The position numbers and the translations under genes are program-made. Shown one piece after another: positions 12,032 through 61,341 of a DNA stretch of 64,000 nucleotides; the stretch's first letter is position 1; each line of letters opens with the position of its first letter. The notes beneath the pieces are model-generated. The model worked only from the letters and a program-made list of their open reading frames with translations. It did not search any database and was not told the origin of the DNA. The DNA comes from Octopus sinensis (lineage: Eukaryota). The DNA is taken from assembly GCF_006345805.1 (NCBI RefSeq), contig NC_043006.1, forward strand, positions 74,648,001 through 74,712,000. The letters are read 5' to 3'.

Positions 12032-12790
12032 GGTTTAAGTAATTGAGATTCAAGTGAATTCTAATGAATTCACATGAATATGGTCCTTAACCAGGATGCA
12101 CCGGAAATCTATATGGTGTTAACCATACGACAAGTGGGGTGATTACAAATAGGAAAAAAGCAACAAGAATGGATTAAAATCTCGGTACAATTGTTTCGTA
12201 CGAGGACATCTTTAATAAGCTACAAAAAATGCAGTAAATACAGATGGCTCGTACTCGTCAGCCGAAAAAACATCAGAGAATTCCAAAACATCGAAAGGGG
12301 TAGATACAAAAGAGGGTGTAAGATTGACTGCATTGAAGAAAGTTCGATTCCTGGAGATCCGATGAAAGGTCTTAAACTTACAGAATTTGTGCGTGTCTAT
12401 ATATAGCTCATATTGAATTGCTAATCAGGTTATGTGAAGAAATTTCGGATATAGTCATGCGAAATTTCTGAAAATCCGAGTAAGAAGCAAAGTGACTGTC
12501 ATATCGTGTAGAGGAAAATCTGAGTAAGAAGCAAAGTGACTGTCTTATCGTGTAGAGGAACAGATTGTTATTGAAATTTACAAGAATCGCAGATAAGTTC
12601 AATTCTTGGAGATCCGATAAAAAGTCTTGAACTTACAGAATATGTGCATGTCCCTATAGTTCATAATCCAGTTATGTGAAGAAATTTTGGGTACAATCAT
12701 GCGAAAATATCAGGGAATCCGAGTGAGAAGCAAAATGACAGTCTTATTCTGTAGAGGGGCAGATTGTTATTGAAACTTACAAGAATCACA
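12032..12790 (-). mobile_element. Hammerhead-bearing element D, copy 1 (Penelope-like terminus), abutting (TA)n
   Basis: About 240 bp homologous to 53971-54210; contains an intact hammerhead; internal ~200-bp and 44-bp duplications. Confidence 0.7.
12180..12267 (-). ncRNA. Type I hammerhead ribozyme
   Basis: Stem I UUUCGG/CCGAGA; core CUGACGA (12261-12255); stem II GUACGAG/CUCGUAC with 43-nt loop; GAAAC-AAUU-GUA; predicted cleavage between 12186 and 12185. Confidence 0.88.
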
Positions 12791-13045
12791 GGGGAAGGAG
12801 GAAGGAAGTAGAATTTAATCAGTTACTGCTATTAATGCTATCAAAGAGAAGGGAACGGGAAGCTAAGGGGATGGACACAAGTTGATACTATAAGAAAATC
12901 TAAGCTATTTTGGTGCAAAATTCGAACTGAGGTCAACAATTTATTTCTTTATTTATAAATGTTACTATTAATAGATTGTAAGCTTACCTATATATATATA
13001 TATATACATTGTAAGGTTTCCTATATATATATATATATATATATA

Positions 13046-13790
13046 CAGGGTGCGAGGGGTATTTAAGGACAGTTTTGGTATACAATAAAACAACTATATT
13101 TCAGCATAAATAAATATGTGTTTGAGTAAATATTTGAGCAATTAGTCTTGATAATGATTTGTTAAGCAAATAATACTTTGAAACCTCCTTCGGCTTCAAT
13201 GGCTGCTACAATGCGGGACCAAAACCGCTGGCATGCTGACATTATGGTTCTTATTCGTTTCGGACATCACCCGGACAATGGTGGCCTTCAGTGAAGCTAG
13301 GGTATTATGAGGATGACGATTAATCTCCCTTTCAGCAGCGCTCCACACGTAGTACGCCATGGGGTTCAAATCTGACGAGTTTGGAGACCACATGTTGGAT
13401 GTTACATATCGTAAAAATTGTCTGACAACCATTCTTGGGTTACTAAGGCTTTGTGAGAAGAGGTTGAATCTTGTTGAAACACGTATGGCCTTCCATTTCA
13501 TACTTCATAAATCCAGGGCTTGATAACAGTTTCCAGTACCTCAATGTATCCAGCTGCATTAATTCTAAGACGCTGTGTCAAACAGTGGGGAGGAATCACA
13601 TGACCTTCGCTACTCACCACTCCTAAAATCATCACAGTTGCTATAAATTTCGTGTGTATCACTCTGGGTACTTCAGAAGGATCTGCACATAACCACCTGT
13701 CATTTCTTCTGTTAGACTTTTGATCCTAGTCAAAGTTTTTCGTCAGAAAAAAAACACACCTTGTTCATAAGGGCTTTTCACTTTGTTAAG
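13046..13790 (-). mobile_element. Tc1/mariner maT-type (DD37D-like) transposase relic
   Basis: GRPYVFQQDSTSSHKA...WSPNSSDLNPMAYYVW; 37 residues between catalytic positions after repairing one frameshift; TA-CAGGGTG terminus at 13044-13052. Confidence 0.85.
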
Positions 13791-14550
13791 TAACCGTTTT
13801 GAACAGATGAGACAGTATTCCTGTATCTTTGCAGATACGAATTGGCCATCACTTTATCTTTATGTATGTATGTATGTATGTATGTATGTATGTATGTATG
13901 TATGTATGTATGTATGTATGTATGTATGTACGCATGTATGCATATATGTATATGTATACAATAAATTAGACAGAGAGATACAGTTGACAATCCAATAATA
14001 TATTTATATTATAATATAACATTATATTCTATGAATATAATATAATAAAAGATTACATGTGGTATTCAACTGTCGTACCAGTGAATTGGATGTTTTACAC
14101 ACCCCTTTGAAGGAATTTCCATAGTTTGTTACGTTACATACATACATACATACATACATACATACATACATATAAATATGTTGATAGAAATGGTAAGACA
14201 ACAAAAGAATGAAAGAGACCTCGATATTATGTAAATAGATGAATTTATCTGTAAATATATGTGACAATTATTCGGCAGGGAGTTTTATCATGGCTACCGA
14301 ATAATTGTCACATGTCATATTTAGAGAGGCATACAGACATACACACATACATGCATATATATATATATATATATTATATATATATATATATTATATATAT
14401 ATATATATATAATATATATATATATACATATATATATATATATATAATATATATATATATATATATATACATTTATATATACATACATATAAATATATAT
14501 ATATGTACATATGTATGTATGTATGTATGTATTATTATTATTATTGTTTA

Positions 14551-15005
14551 AGAGACCAACGCATGCCGTCAAAATAACACTAGGGTACAAATATACGAAA
14601 CCCAATGTACCCATCATGACTGCCTGTCTGATAAGAGTACACAGTACATGCATCACAACCACATATGCGTGGCATTTTCTTCACATTGAGAAGCCCATCC
14701 CGCTCCAAAGGTCCTTGAATAAGAGTTGTTTAAGGATGAGGAATGAAACACCCATGTCTCTTTCCAGGGATGAATTATTCCTCTCAACACATGACTATGA
14801 TACCCACCACTACCCTTACTCATGATCTGAGATGCGCATATTTTCAACCACTAAGGGACATGCTCAACTAGTTACGGTCAAACAACTAACAAGCAAATCT
14901 GTGGTATTGAGCTGAATATTTGCTGTAGCCCATCTTTTTATACCAAGACTAAACTTGTACATGATTACGCTTCCAATCAGTTAAGATCAGAAGCCATGGG
15001 AGCCA
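14551..15005 (-). mobile_element. Unclassified repeat family F, internally deleted copy, flanked by (ATT)n
   Basis: Reverse-complement homology to 58441-59003. Confidence 0.75.
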
Positions 15006-15089
15006 TTATTATTATTATTATTATTATTATTATTATTATTATTATTATTATTATTATTATTATTATCATCATCATCATCATCATCATTG

Positions 15090-59003: not shown

Positions 59004-59234
59004 TAATAATAATAATAACAACAATAATAATAATAACAAGAGCACTTAGAGAGTGCAAACTTCCGCCAAGCACAGCAACGTCCACTCAACGATTAGCCAG
59101 AGATGATTTTTAAAATGAGAATATCTGAAATAAACTCGACTGCTCTGGGAAACTGGGACTGACATGAGAGTAGAACGTGCTCAGAAAACTGATTTATTGG
59201 GTACAGAGAGAATATTGAGACTGGTACTTGGGTG

Positions 59235-59590
59235 TTAATGCTTAGCGGTATTTCGTCTGTCTTTACGTTCTGAGTTCAAATTCTACCGAGGTCGACTTTG
59301 CCTTTCATCCTTTCGGAGTCGATTAAATAAGTTATGCACTGGGATCGATATAATCGACTTAATCCGTTTGTCTGTCTTTGTGTGTCCCCTCTGTGTTTAG
59401 CCCCTTGTGGGTAGTAAAGAAATAAGTATTTCGTCTGTCTTTACGTTCTGAGTTCTGGCTCCGCCGTGGTCGACTTTGCCTTTCATCCTTTCGGGACTTA
59501 TAAGCTAAGTACTAGTTGTGTTCTGGGGTCGATCTAATCGACTGGCCCCCTCCTCCAAAGTTTCAGGCATTGTGCCTAGAGTAGAAAAGA
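59235..59590 (+). mobile_element. SINE A dimer with both tail types
   Basis: Junction aaagaaataa|gtatttcgtc; second unit ends agtagaaaagaat. Confidence 0.88.
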
Positions 59591-60568
59591 ATAATTATCA
59601 GAATAACACTAATCACACACACACTAGGACATTTAAACACTTAACAGTGTACATAGGTAGATAAAGCTTTACAAATTGTTTAGAGTTAGTATGAATAGCA
59701 GCCAAATCGCTATGAAATCATTCATAACCTCCTTAAAAAGTTAAGGATACGTATGTTTTCACTATCATGCAGCTGTGGATATATTAAACCTAAACAAAAT
59801 ACTACGACTCCAACACTTTTGATCACCGGTTTACTGCTAGTTGATCTGGCGCTGAGAAGCCAGAACAACATATAAATAAATATTTGTAATATACGAGAAT
59901 GTTGCCGATTGAGTACACGCGCTTCTTGTACAAAATTCACCTTTGTTGCAGGACGAATAAAAACCGAATAAAATATTGATGGAAGTCGATTCTATCGCTT
60001 GCATACCTCCTATAAATTTAATTATATTTCCTAGTGAAACTGTAGCTCTCTTAAATTATTATTTTTTTTAACATTCTTTAGTACCGAGGTTTCCATCATC
60101 TGAACTTCTCTCTCTCTTTCCCTTTCTCTCTGTGCAAGAACGCTGTAAAATTTTCGACTAAGAGAAATGTGATCACACTTTCCAAAATTCTCATCCCACA
60201 CGAACACTTAAAACGTCCTTGCATATTTCCATTTCAATATCTCTCTTTATCTCTATATACTCATCTCTCTTGCTCCCAATTATCTATCTATCTATCTATC
60301 TATCTATCTATCTATCTATCTATCTATCTATCTATCTATCTATCTGCCTGTCTATCACTTCATCTTTCTGTATCTCTGTATATTTCTATCAGACTAACAC
60401 TTTTTTTTATCCATTATCAAATTTCTCACTTTTCTTCGTATATCAAATTGACGTCGGATCTCTTTCATAAATCAACACTTTTACTTACCCCACTCTCTCT
60501 CTCTCTCTGTCTTTTCGATCTTATTCGTATGTATGTGCAAATGTATTATATATTCATTATACTTACAT

Positions 60569-60831
60569 TCGGGGAGGCGCGTGGCTTAGTGGATAGGGTG
60601 TCAGCATCATGATCTTAAGATTGTGGTTTTGATTCCTGGACCGGGCGACGGGTTGTGTTCTTGAGCAAAACACTTCATTTCACGTTGCTCCAGTCCACTC
60701 AGCTGGCAAAAATGAATAACGCTGCGATGGTCTGGCGTCCCGTCCAGTAGGGGAACACATACGCCATAGAAACGGGGAAACCGGGCCCATGATCCTGGCT
60801 AGGCTTTAAAAGGGCGGATTTATTTATTATT
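60569..60831 (+). mobile_element. SINE with head E and tail T2, 12-bp TSD
   Basis: TSD ttatacttacat at 60557-60568 and 60832-60843. Confidence 0.88.
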
Positions 60832-60906
60832 TTATACTTACATACATACATATATATATACATATACATACATATATATATATATATATATATATATATA
60901 TATATA

Positions 60907-61341
60907 TATATAATATTAAGTAGAGACAAAACCACTATTTTGTAAATCAAACAAGGAAAGACTTAATCAATACATAAAAAAATTTTAATATAAAGTAAAT
61001 AAATCGCCACTACAATTGTTTCCTGTCTTCAAATGACATTCATCAGGTGGATTTCATATCTTCCATTCAATTTAAAGTTATGAAGTCATAACTTTAAATT
61101 GAATGGAAGATATGAAATCCACCTGATGAATGTCATTTGAAGACAGGAAACAATTGTAGTGGCGATTTATTTACTTTATATTAAAATTTTTTTATGTATT
61201 GATTAAGTCTTTCCTTGTTTGATTTACAAAATAGTGGTTTTGTCTCTACTTAATATTATATAATATTTTACTATAAAATTGGATTCAATCCTAAACCTGA
61301 TTTTTCCCTGTAAATTTGGATTTATTTCCTAATATTTTATT
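60907..61341 (+). mobile_element. Palindrome+tail element in (TA)n, family P1, long form
   Basis: 177-bp arms 60907-61083 and 61086-61262, 2-nt loop, unique tail 61263-61341. Confidence 0.9.
61115..61168 (+). ncRNA. Type I hammerhead motif (mirror copy on the minus strand at 61001-61054)
   Basis: Stem I AAAU-CCAC/GUGG-cg-AUUU; CUGAUGA; stem II UGUC/GACA with a non-canonical A.G first pair; GAAAC-AAUU-GUA; predicted cleavage after 61158. Confidence 0.8.

Follow-up and report, generated by a model that had tools for sequence, protein, structure and literature searches.

We examined a 64,000-nucleotide (nt) stretch of the Octopus sinensis genome (NCBI RefSeq assembly GCF_006345805.1, contig NC_043006.1, positions 74,648,001 to 74,712,000 of the forward strand; hereafter the window, with positions counted from its first letter) and found seven short elements inserted in (TA)n microsatellites, five of them fold-backs with a single-copy tail on one side and four of them carrying complete hammerhead ribozyme (HHR) motifs. 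These elements are probably insertion products of several (TA)n-targeting, endonuclease-bearing lineages of Penelope-like elements (PLEs), in the form either of 5′-truncated 3′-terminal fragments or of short non-autonomous derivatives with the PLE 3′ module. The hallmarks of PLEs are present: an HHR near the 3′ end, a (TA)n target, fold-back, variable truncation and a one-sided tail; it is from these, and not from an open reading frame (ORF), that we draw the putative link to PLEs. An earlier reading of the same letters (the original prediction) had taken the elements for termini or non-autonomous derivatives of TA-targeting PLE lineages, and every hallmark testable within the window appears to support it. 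The phenomenon matches published PLE biology: it is a clear-cut case of an already known kind of mobile element and not a novel system.

Insertions in (TA)n arrays and their fold-back architecture

All seven elements (E1–E7; Table 1) are present where the original prediction had placed them. We read every site and found in each case that complex sequence breaks up a (TA)n array, with 13 of the 14 element ends abutting (TA)n of at least 12 bp (the exception is the right end of E6). One array can house several elements, as in the nested stretches at 26173–26921, 28446–28856 and 53482–55640. The seven insertions in (TA)n are genuine, and the observation as a whole is far beyond chance. Using blastn of the elements against the window, we sorted these copies of 165–957 bp into five families (A–E) with no similarity from one family to another, in agreement with the earlier count of at least five. 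Family A comprises E1 and E5, which are 79% identical over the 3′ ~225 nt proximal to (TA)n and not beyond, and family B comprises E2 and E7, which are 94% identical across arm and tail and lie in opposite orientations; E3 (family C), E4 (family D) and E6 (family E) are singletons. The strand of E3 is given by analogy, from the direction arm to tail. No element has direct terminal repeats, pseudo-long terminal repeats (pLTRs) or a partial tandem organization, E1 having only an internal duplication of ~200 bp without an HHR. There was no sign of a tRNA origin for any element, and the window has no tRNA genes.

Five of the seven elements (E2, E3, E4, E6 and E7) consist of a palindrome and a unique tail at one side. 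An unbiased scan for inverted repeats across the whole window, performed after microsatellite masking, returned exactly these five as hairpins whose arms reach 35 nt and whose centre does not exceed ~31 nt; the sole further short-loop match was a 22-nt stem at 14257–14315, and E1 and E5 have no inverted repeats. The arms are 177 nt long and 100% complementary in E7, about 60 nt with ~97% identity in E4, about 60 nt with ~94% identity in E2, ~37 nt with ~88% identity in E3, and ~80 nt with ~75% identity and a 7-nt indel in E6. Because arm identity grades from 100% to ~75%, with indels, the fold-backs are genomic features of different ages and not assembly artefacts; on this scale E7 would be the youngest and E6 the oldest. 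In four of the five, the arms meet at a centre of 2–9 nt with nothing between them. One arm of each fold-back abuts (TA)n (gap −5 to +5 nt), and the tail occupies the space between the second arm and the next array, with a length of 66 nt in E4, 78 nt in E2, 79 nt in E7, 91 nt in E3 and ~100 nt in E6. Five palindromes with tails of 70–120 bp had been predicted, and five were found, with tails of 66–105 nt.

In family B, E2 and E7 agree in the outer arm end and in the arm/tail boundary but differ in their fold-back points (arms of ~60 nt in E2 and 177 nt in E7). A fixed outer boundary with different fold-back points fits independent 5′ truncation and not a fixed-length transposon. The tails do not end in TA-like sequence: they run, for example, ...GGGACCTAC or TTAAACC up to the ATAT of the array. 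In families B, D and E, the single TATATA tract of arm plus tail lies at the arm/tail boundary or within 7 nt of it. Beyond AT-rich 9–10-mers, we found no motif that the five families have in common at their 3′ ends or in their tails.

Hammerhead motifs

A hammerhead descriptor search, which the original prediction had proposed as a check, was run across the window. The descriptor consisted of helix I (at least 4 bp), CUGANGA, helix II (at least 3 bp), GAAA and helix III (at least 3 bp), and further demanded A15.1-U16.1 at the start of helix III and a non-G at position 17; chance expectation was taken from 100 second-order Markov shuffles. This resulted in five complete motifs at four elements (one each in E1, E4 and E5 and two in E7; 0.02 expected), all of them within elements already flagged, and allowing one core mismatch added none (0.25 expected). 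The 3′ ends of the HHRs lie 86, 149, 151 and 179 nt from (TA)n, close to the ~100–185 nt first put forward, and all four loci are oriented towards the nearest array. The probability that four random positions would each have an array within 200 nt downstream is ~3 × 10−4.

Five elements had originally been credited with a hammerhead core or relic. The four named above were recovered, and the fifth, at 55646 in E6, is undetectable: its candidate relic (GAAUCAGCUGUC, minus strand, near 55706–55722) needs two core mismatches, has no helix I and is unsupported. We also discarded a half-motif of GAAA plus an 8-nt palindrome, which is not enriched in the window (9 found, 6.5 expected); additional half-motifs at 53720 (+) and 27293 (−) have no upstream CUGANGA and were treated as chance.

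All five complete motifs satisfy the structural definition of a type-I hammerhead (cores, helix order, A15.1-U16.1, non-G at position 17). Helix III is ACAAUUGU in E1, E5 and E7, that is, 2 bp and a palindromic AAUU loop. A palindromic stem III had been claimed for four elements, and these three bear it out; in E4, helix III is ACAG/CUGU closed by an 8-nt loop and not a loop-less palindrome. The dimensions of the family A motif are also like those of type I, with a helix II of 7 bp, and helix I measures 4–6 bp across E1, E5 and E7. Helix II of family A holds a structured insert of 43–46 nt. The pair 10.1-11.1 is G-C in E1 only, being A-U in E5, unpaired A/G in E7 and U/U in E4. Cleavage is predicted in E1 after GUA, between 12186 and 12185 and 154 nt from the element 3′ end, and in E5 155 nt from the 3′ end. 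E7 carries a mirror copy of its motif in the inverted arm; in E4, the palindrome centre takes in the 5′ strand of helix I, so that the HHR is complete on the plus strand only.

We folded these motifs with RNAfold, which yielded a three-way junction as the minimum-free-energy structure of E4 and recovered helices I and II of E1. When two copies were cofolded, the double hammerhead reached −18.4 kcal/mol in E7 (−11.2 as monomers) and −55.2 kcal/mol in E1 (−48.6 as monomers), so that the dimer, with an intermolecular helix III of 8 bp, is 6.6–7.2 kcal/mol more stable than two monomers. By these predictions the HHRs of E1, E5 and E7 would fold best as dimers, and the helix III of E4 (4 bp and an 8-nt loop) would be competent as a monomer. 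An HHR within a perfectly palindromic mini-element would be unable to fold and is probably non-functional there. In the alignment of E1 with E5, 97.7% of 44 pair cells are standard pairs despite 79% identity, and four pairs of helices I and II have changed on both sides in a compensatory manner. In slid controls, 25–50% of cells were paired and 0–1 compensatory changes occurred. The covariation between E1 and E5 is modest evidence, from two sequences, and is compatible with the fold having been under selection in the parent lineages.

Table 1. Window coordinates of the elements, their flanking arrays and their hammerhead motifs; the last two rows refer to the weevil locus L002 (see text)
Feature	Family	Position	Strand	Parts	Flanking arrays
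E1	A	12032–12988	−	957-bp non-palindromic insertion; 3′ module 12032–12267 (−); 5′ part with internal tandem duplication of ~200 bp, 12340–12592 / 12595–12791	(AT)39 at 11954–12031; (TA)n at 12989–13045
E1 HHR	A	12180–12267	−	helix I UUUCGG/CCGAGA; core CUGACGA; helix II GUACGAG/CUCGUAC with 43-nt structured insert; GAAA; helix III ACAAUUGU	
E2	B	26241–26440	−	tail 26241–26317; arms 26318–26377 and 26382–26440; centre 4 nt	(AT)n 26173–26240; (TA)n 26430–26715
E3	C	26716–26880	+	arms 26716–26751 / 26756–26790; centre 4 nt; tail 26791–26880	(TA)n 26430–26715; (TA)n 26881–26921
E4	D	28470–28667	+	arms 28470–28528 / 28538–28598; centre 9 nt; tail 28599–28667	(AT)n 28446–28469; (AT)n 28668–28696
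E4 HHR	D	28530–28582	+	helix I GAGCUUC/GAAGCUC; core CUGAUGA; helix II UUC/GAA; GAAA; helix III ACAG/CUGU with 8-nt loop	
E5	A	53971–54461	−	491-bp non-palindromic insertion; E1 homology confined to 53971–54209	(TA)8 at 53955–53970 (tail of a short interspersed nuclear element); (TA)17 at 54462–54496
E5 HHR	A	54121–54209	−	helix I UUUAG/CUAAA; core CUGAUGA; helix II AUACUGG/CUUAGUAU; GAAA; helix III ACAAUUGU	
E6	E	55641–55935		arms 55641–55722 / 55754–55838; centre ~31 nt; tail ~55839–55935	left (TA)23; right degenerate TA, then (TG)n
E7	B	60907–61340	+	arms 60907–61083 / 61086–61262; centre 2 nt; tail 61263–61340	(TA)n 60872–60912; (TA)n 61341–61379
E7 HHR	B	61119–61162	+	helix I CCAC/GUGG; core CUGAUGA; helix II (A)UGUC/GACA(G); GAAA; helix III ACAAUUGU	
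E7 mirror HHR	B	61007–61050	−	located in the inverted arm	
L002 inverted copy		3219–3700	−		
L002 direct copy		5916–6398	+		

Comparison with Penelope-like elements and alternative readings

PLE insertions are highly 5′-truncated, often with an inverted 5′-truncated copy and a tail of 30–40 bp at one end only, and the combination of inverted copy and one-sided tail has been described as PLE-specific (Craig et al. 2021, PMC8557442). In the same survey, Naiads prefer (TA)n as their target and almost every Hydra family inserts there, canonical HHRs are universal in Hydra and the other clades with a C-terminal endonuclease (EN), and Hydra elements occur in Mollusca. The octopus elements share with these EN-bearing, (TA)n-targeting PLEs (Hydra, Naiad and, via the CX2-5CxxC linker, Neptune; PMC8557442) the insertion in (TA)n, the 5′ truncation, the inverted truncated copy, the one-sided tail and the HHR. 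They differ in having neither a reverse transcriptase (RT)/GIY-YIG ORF nor a pLTR-ORF-pLTR unit at lengths of 165–957 bp, and in the arms of four fold-backs meeting directly at their short centres.

The ribozymes allow a similar comparison. Most PLE HHRs are isolated motifs “probably related to truncated PLEs,” and in Schistosoma opposite-strand pairs sometimes lie 100–700 bp apart (Cervera & de la Peña 2014, PMC4209133). Metazoan type-I and PLE hammerheads that work as dimers have been described as having a helix III of 2 bp with a palindromic loop (PMC4209133). The octopus motifs resemble these (PMC4209133, RF00163) in the CUGANGA...GAAA core, the long helix II, the short helix I and the predicted dimers, and the helix III of E1, E5 and E7 (ACAAUUGU) has the same 2 bp and 4-nt palindromic loop as the Rfam consensus (ACGCGCGU). 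They depart from these in the pair 10.1-11.1 outside E1, in the helix II insert of family A and in the 4-bp helix III of E4.

As a positive control we used an RT-encoding PLE locus of the weevil Sitophilus oryzae (L002), found with the protein sequence of the lizard element Poseidon_Ac (taken from the supplement of PMC11167929) and scanned with a slightly relaxed HHR descriptor. An HHR lies 20 nt past the RT ORF and ~55 nt from the insertion end, and the upstream inverted copy is 99% identical and has a mirror HHR. The inverted copy includes 30 extra nt (ACGATGGCCGCGAAAGCCTAAACTACTACA, the start of the ORF) that are absent from the direct copy, which constitutes a one-sided tail. This locus therefore has the same triad of HHR, inverted copy and tail as the octopus elements, with an ORF in the middle. 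A Poseidon_Ac RT/EN query matched 4606 PLE proteins, and the 120 matches listed were all from insects, vertebrates or metagenomes.

How such elements might form can be drawn from work on Poseidon_Ac itself. In the experiments of Frangieh et al. (2024, PMC11167929), the purified PLE protein cut both strands of AT-rich target DNA and extended each of them, and it began reverse transcription at two internal sites that lie as far apart as the tail is long; insertion did not require cleavage by the HHR, and the inverted copy and tail were traced to the cleavage and extension of both strands and to the two start sites. We propose that in the octopus a PLE GIY-YIG endonuclease would nick a (TA)n array, and that target-primed reverse transcription would begin close to the 3′ terminus of the element RNA, at a defined position. 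Target homology would not be needed for this initiation, because the tail ends are not TA-like. An early stop of cDNA synthesis would produce the 5′ truncation. The inverted arm would arise in the same event, either by the cDNA 3′ end snapping back and priming itself or by extension of the second cleaved target strand with a jump of the polymerase between templates. At the internal TATATA tract, the opposite side of the broken (TA)n array would then capture the new strand, leaving the distal 66–105 nt as a single-copy tail. The hammerhead would be inherited from the parent element, in whose transcripts it would act as a dimer. Judged from the sequences, the pattern of E2 and E7 would be impossible to reach by truncating a palindromic master and possible by independent abortive reverse transcription with an inverted arm made in the same event; short centres of 2–4 nt, as in E2, E3 and E7, and arms that are 100% identical, as in E7, would fit snap-back self-priming or second-strand extension with a template jump.

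Poseidon_Ac resembles the octopus case in its AT-rich target, in the cleavage and extension of both strands, in its tolerance of 5′ truncations, in the spacing of its two RT start sites, which is that of the genomic tail, and in an HHR ~90 nt upstream of the RT start. It differs in tail length, in belonging to another clade (Penelope/Poseidon) and in not being (TA)n-specific (PMC11167929). Its start sites also have no homology to the target, whereas the tail-less octopus arm ends at or near (within 7 nt of) a TATATA that matches (TA)n. This suggests that microhomology with the (TA)n target may set the junction of the tail-less arm, a detail that is possibly new to PLE integration; microhomology at TATATA would explain why the tails are longer than the 30–40-nt norm. 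It is rather doubtful, in our estimate, that two proposals hold jointly: that the tail forms by TATATA/(TA)n microhomology capture of the returning strand and not by two homology-independent starts, and that family A is a portable cassette of HHR plus 150 nt representing a PLE-dependent class of cephalopod short interspersed nuclear elements (SINEs).

Several observations weigh against assigning the elements to PLEs. As originally predicted, no autonomous RT/GIY-YIG ORF is visible in the window: tblastn with the Poseidon_Ac protein found nothing at E < 1, a GIY-YIG regular expression had no match, the only two xxDD motifs fall within LINE-like fragments (LINE, long interspersed nuclear element), and Pfam gave no matches for ten ORFs (of 413 in the window) that resemble transposable elements. 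No RT/GIY-YIG coding remnant was found beside the non-palindromic E1 and E5. The elements are thus not autonomous PLEs and are at most fragments or derivatives. A 20-kb Octopus vulgaris locus (L001; GCA_951406725.2) had no copy of families A–E and no HHR, and patterns for families A and B had 0 matches in viral contigs and two metagenome scans. The descriptor found no HHR in E2, E3 or E6; in E2, the fold-back point lies downstream of the HHR position, which accounts for the absence. For families C and E, the assignment to PLEs would come from architecture and target alone. In Rfam, the whole window had no match at the gathering score: Hammerhead_1 aligned end to end (positions 1–45) with E7 at 61117–61166 at 10.8 bits (threshold 34), and a small-region search found no HHR match for E4. 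The tails of 66–105 nt exceed the 30–40 nt of published PLEs (PMC8557442), and the coincidence of TATATA with the tail boundary was noticed after the fact, in three families.

E1 and E5 bear on which form of the PLE explanation applies. They have only the 3′ ~235 nt in common and are unrelated upstream of the HHR, which fits non-autonomous units at least as well as truncated autonomous copies. The homology ends at the 5′ edge of helix I (columns 1–8 of the alignment match in 2 of 8 and conservation begins at column 9), both are complete (TA)n-bounded insertions with no coding remnant found upstream, and the sequence upstream of their HHRs has no relatives elsewhere in the window or in L001. 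These elements could be SINE-like or retrozyme-like units that depend on PLEs and multiply at their short length, with a conserved 3′ cassette (HHR plus ~150 nt) that a PLE reverse transcriptase would recognize and that sits on unrelated 5′ bodies, and not dead-on-arrival truncations; this would refine the PLE explanation and not exclude it, and we consider it possible but somewhat unlikely. Animal retrozymes have been proposed to be PLE pLTR derivatives (PMC7229834; 10.64898/2026.07.22.740005). However, family A has only two copies, and a fast-evolving non-coding pLTR could simply be unalignable at their divergence; the lengths in family B differ by truncation point, as is typical of abortive reverse transcription; and the window contains no HHR-bearing tandem monomers, the defining retrozyme layout, by which retrozymes proper are excluded. 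The animal non-LTR retrozymes (Cervera & de la Peña 2020, PMC7229834; Li et al. 2026) are likewise short, AT-rich and non-coding, with a type-I HHR, and are proposed to be pLTR-derived and PLE-mobilized, but theirs are head-to-tail monomers of 170–400 nt, each with an HHR, that give circular RNAs, where the octopus elements have one HHR or an inverted pair.

It has also to be asked whether (TA)n is a target at all. At 8 sites in the window an octopus SINE has GAAACTGAAAGAARCC as its 3′ end and then (TA)n, (TATG)n or a similar array, so that microsatellite tails do exist in this genome. The arrays around the elements might by analogy, as in some LINE/SINE pairs, be the elements' own 3′ microsatellite tails, with LINEs as the mobilizing machinery. 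We find this quite improbable, given that arrays stand at both element ends, including the 5′ or tail-less side, that several elements are nested in one array, and that HHRs and one-sided tails are not LINE or SINE features.

The five complete HHRs (0.02 expected), with their compensatory changes, would be incidental if the elements were miniature inverted-repeat transposable elements (MITEs) or fold-back DNA transposons, for example derived from Tc1/mariner with its integration at TA. Such elements are also short, AT-rich, hairpin-forming and TA-associated, the octopus layout is palindromic with TA-containing targets, and a mariner-like transposase remnant (13199–13725, minus strand) starts just past the (TA)n that bounds E1 on its 5′ side. 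This remnant consists of two adjacent ORF fragments that are Tc1/mariner-type by eye (...SPNSSDLNPMAYYVW...), with no Pfam match at E ≤ 0.01. By blastn, however, it has no sequence in common with any element. The octopus tail lies outside the palindrome, making the termini unmatched (the two ends are not mutual inverted repeats), E1 and E5 have no inverted repeats, and the fixed outer ends and variable centres of E2 and E7 are the opposite of what excision or deletion of an element with terminal inverted repeats would leave; we judge a MITE origin very improbable. An origin of the palindromes in chimeric fold-back reads, as artefacts of sequencing or assembly, with HHRs that match by chance, is hardly credible: the 100% identical 177-nt arms and 2-nt centre of E7 might suggest it, but there are five palindromes with graded divergence and indels, family B is present twice with different centres, and HHRs are enriched more than 100-fold over shuffles.

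Neighbouring repeats and significance

The window is AT-rich (26–45% GC) and dense in microsatellites and short interspersed repeats. The eight SINE 3′ ends lie at 11643, 27747, 28862, 33142, 35878, 40398, 53926 and 63150 (0.08 expected) and, where checked, run into a microsatellite, for instance (TA)n or (TATG)n; several of the arrays that house elements are tails of octopus SINEs, which probably supply many (TA)n targets. Adjoining E4, a 117-bp GC-rich, strongly structured element (TGGCCTGCTCGCTTAGCC...CACGTGATCACGTGA) occupies 28697–28813 between two (AT)n blocks. It has no HHR and no Rfam match, and its minus-strand fold has a z-score of −2.7. A copy with 89% identity and the same ends is found in (TA)n on an Octopus vulgaris chromosome (L001, 20163–20280), and we take the 117-bp element to be a putative further (TA)n-resident mobile unit. 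Between E5 and E6 are two 529-bp blocks (54497–55025 and 55066–55594), 100% identical and each followed by (TA)20-23, in which CUGAUGA is present without a hammerhead; the pair could be a recent unequal (TA)n exchange, two insertions of one element or an assembly duplication. An unclassified insert of ~275 bp (53536–53810), between (TA)27 and a SINE, contains GAAACAGCTGTA, which matches the 3′ half of an HHR, palindromic helix III included, but has no CUGANGA upstream; this resemblance may be accidental, or the insert may belong to a sixth family that has decayed.

Other repeats in the window include a large imperfect inverted repeat at 24950–25901 (arms of ~390–450 nt with 88–93% identity, a centre of ~200 nt and no HHR), which is mostly low-complexity sequence of the AC/TG/TATG type, and two tandem repeats, one at 8293–9078 (period 290 bp, 2.7 copies, with (AAT)n and a perfect 24-mer array) and one, SINE-related, at 22834–23314 (period 182 bp, 2.6 copies). 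LINE-like RT fragments with FVDDL/YMDDL motifs and a C-terminal ...SLEKRRCRGDLI... are located at 41847–42455 (+), 39752–40192 (−), 24424–24723 (−) and 3464–3811 (−). The ORF at 41847–42455 has 89% identity to an Octopus vulgaris hypothetical protein; an exact look-up of a window LINE ORF returned nothing, and a query with a SINE-derived ORF returned one 543-bp contig. When Rfam was searched at E ≤ 10, the list for the window was dominated by microRNA (miRNA) models on palindromes and microsatellites. Four of these (MIR5185, MIR9746, MIR4208 and mir-302) scored 44–64 bits at 61022–61148, 28471–28596 and 26350–26409, below their gathering thresholds.

The finding in itself confirms published biology. 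For the octopus, it would mean that hammerhead-bearing, (TA)n-targeting Penelope-like lineages have left many short footprints in the genome, probably unannotated and nested in the microsatellite tails of SINEs, and that the fold-back copies among them are easily mistaken for miRNA hairpins or MITEs. For PLEs, the step that makes the inverted copy and tail has been reconstituted in vitro for one lizard element only (PMC11167929). The very short octopus fold-backs would be natural products of single events, and with genome-wide data they could be used to test how the inverted copy and tail of PLEs are formed.

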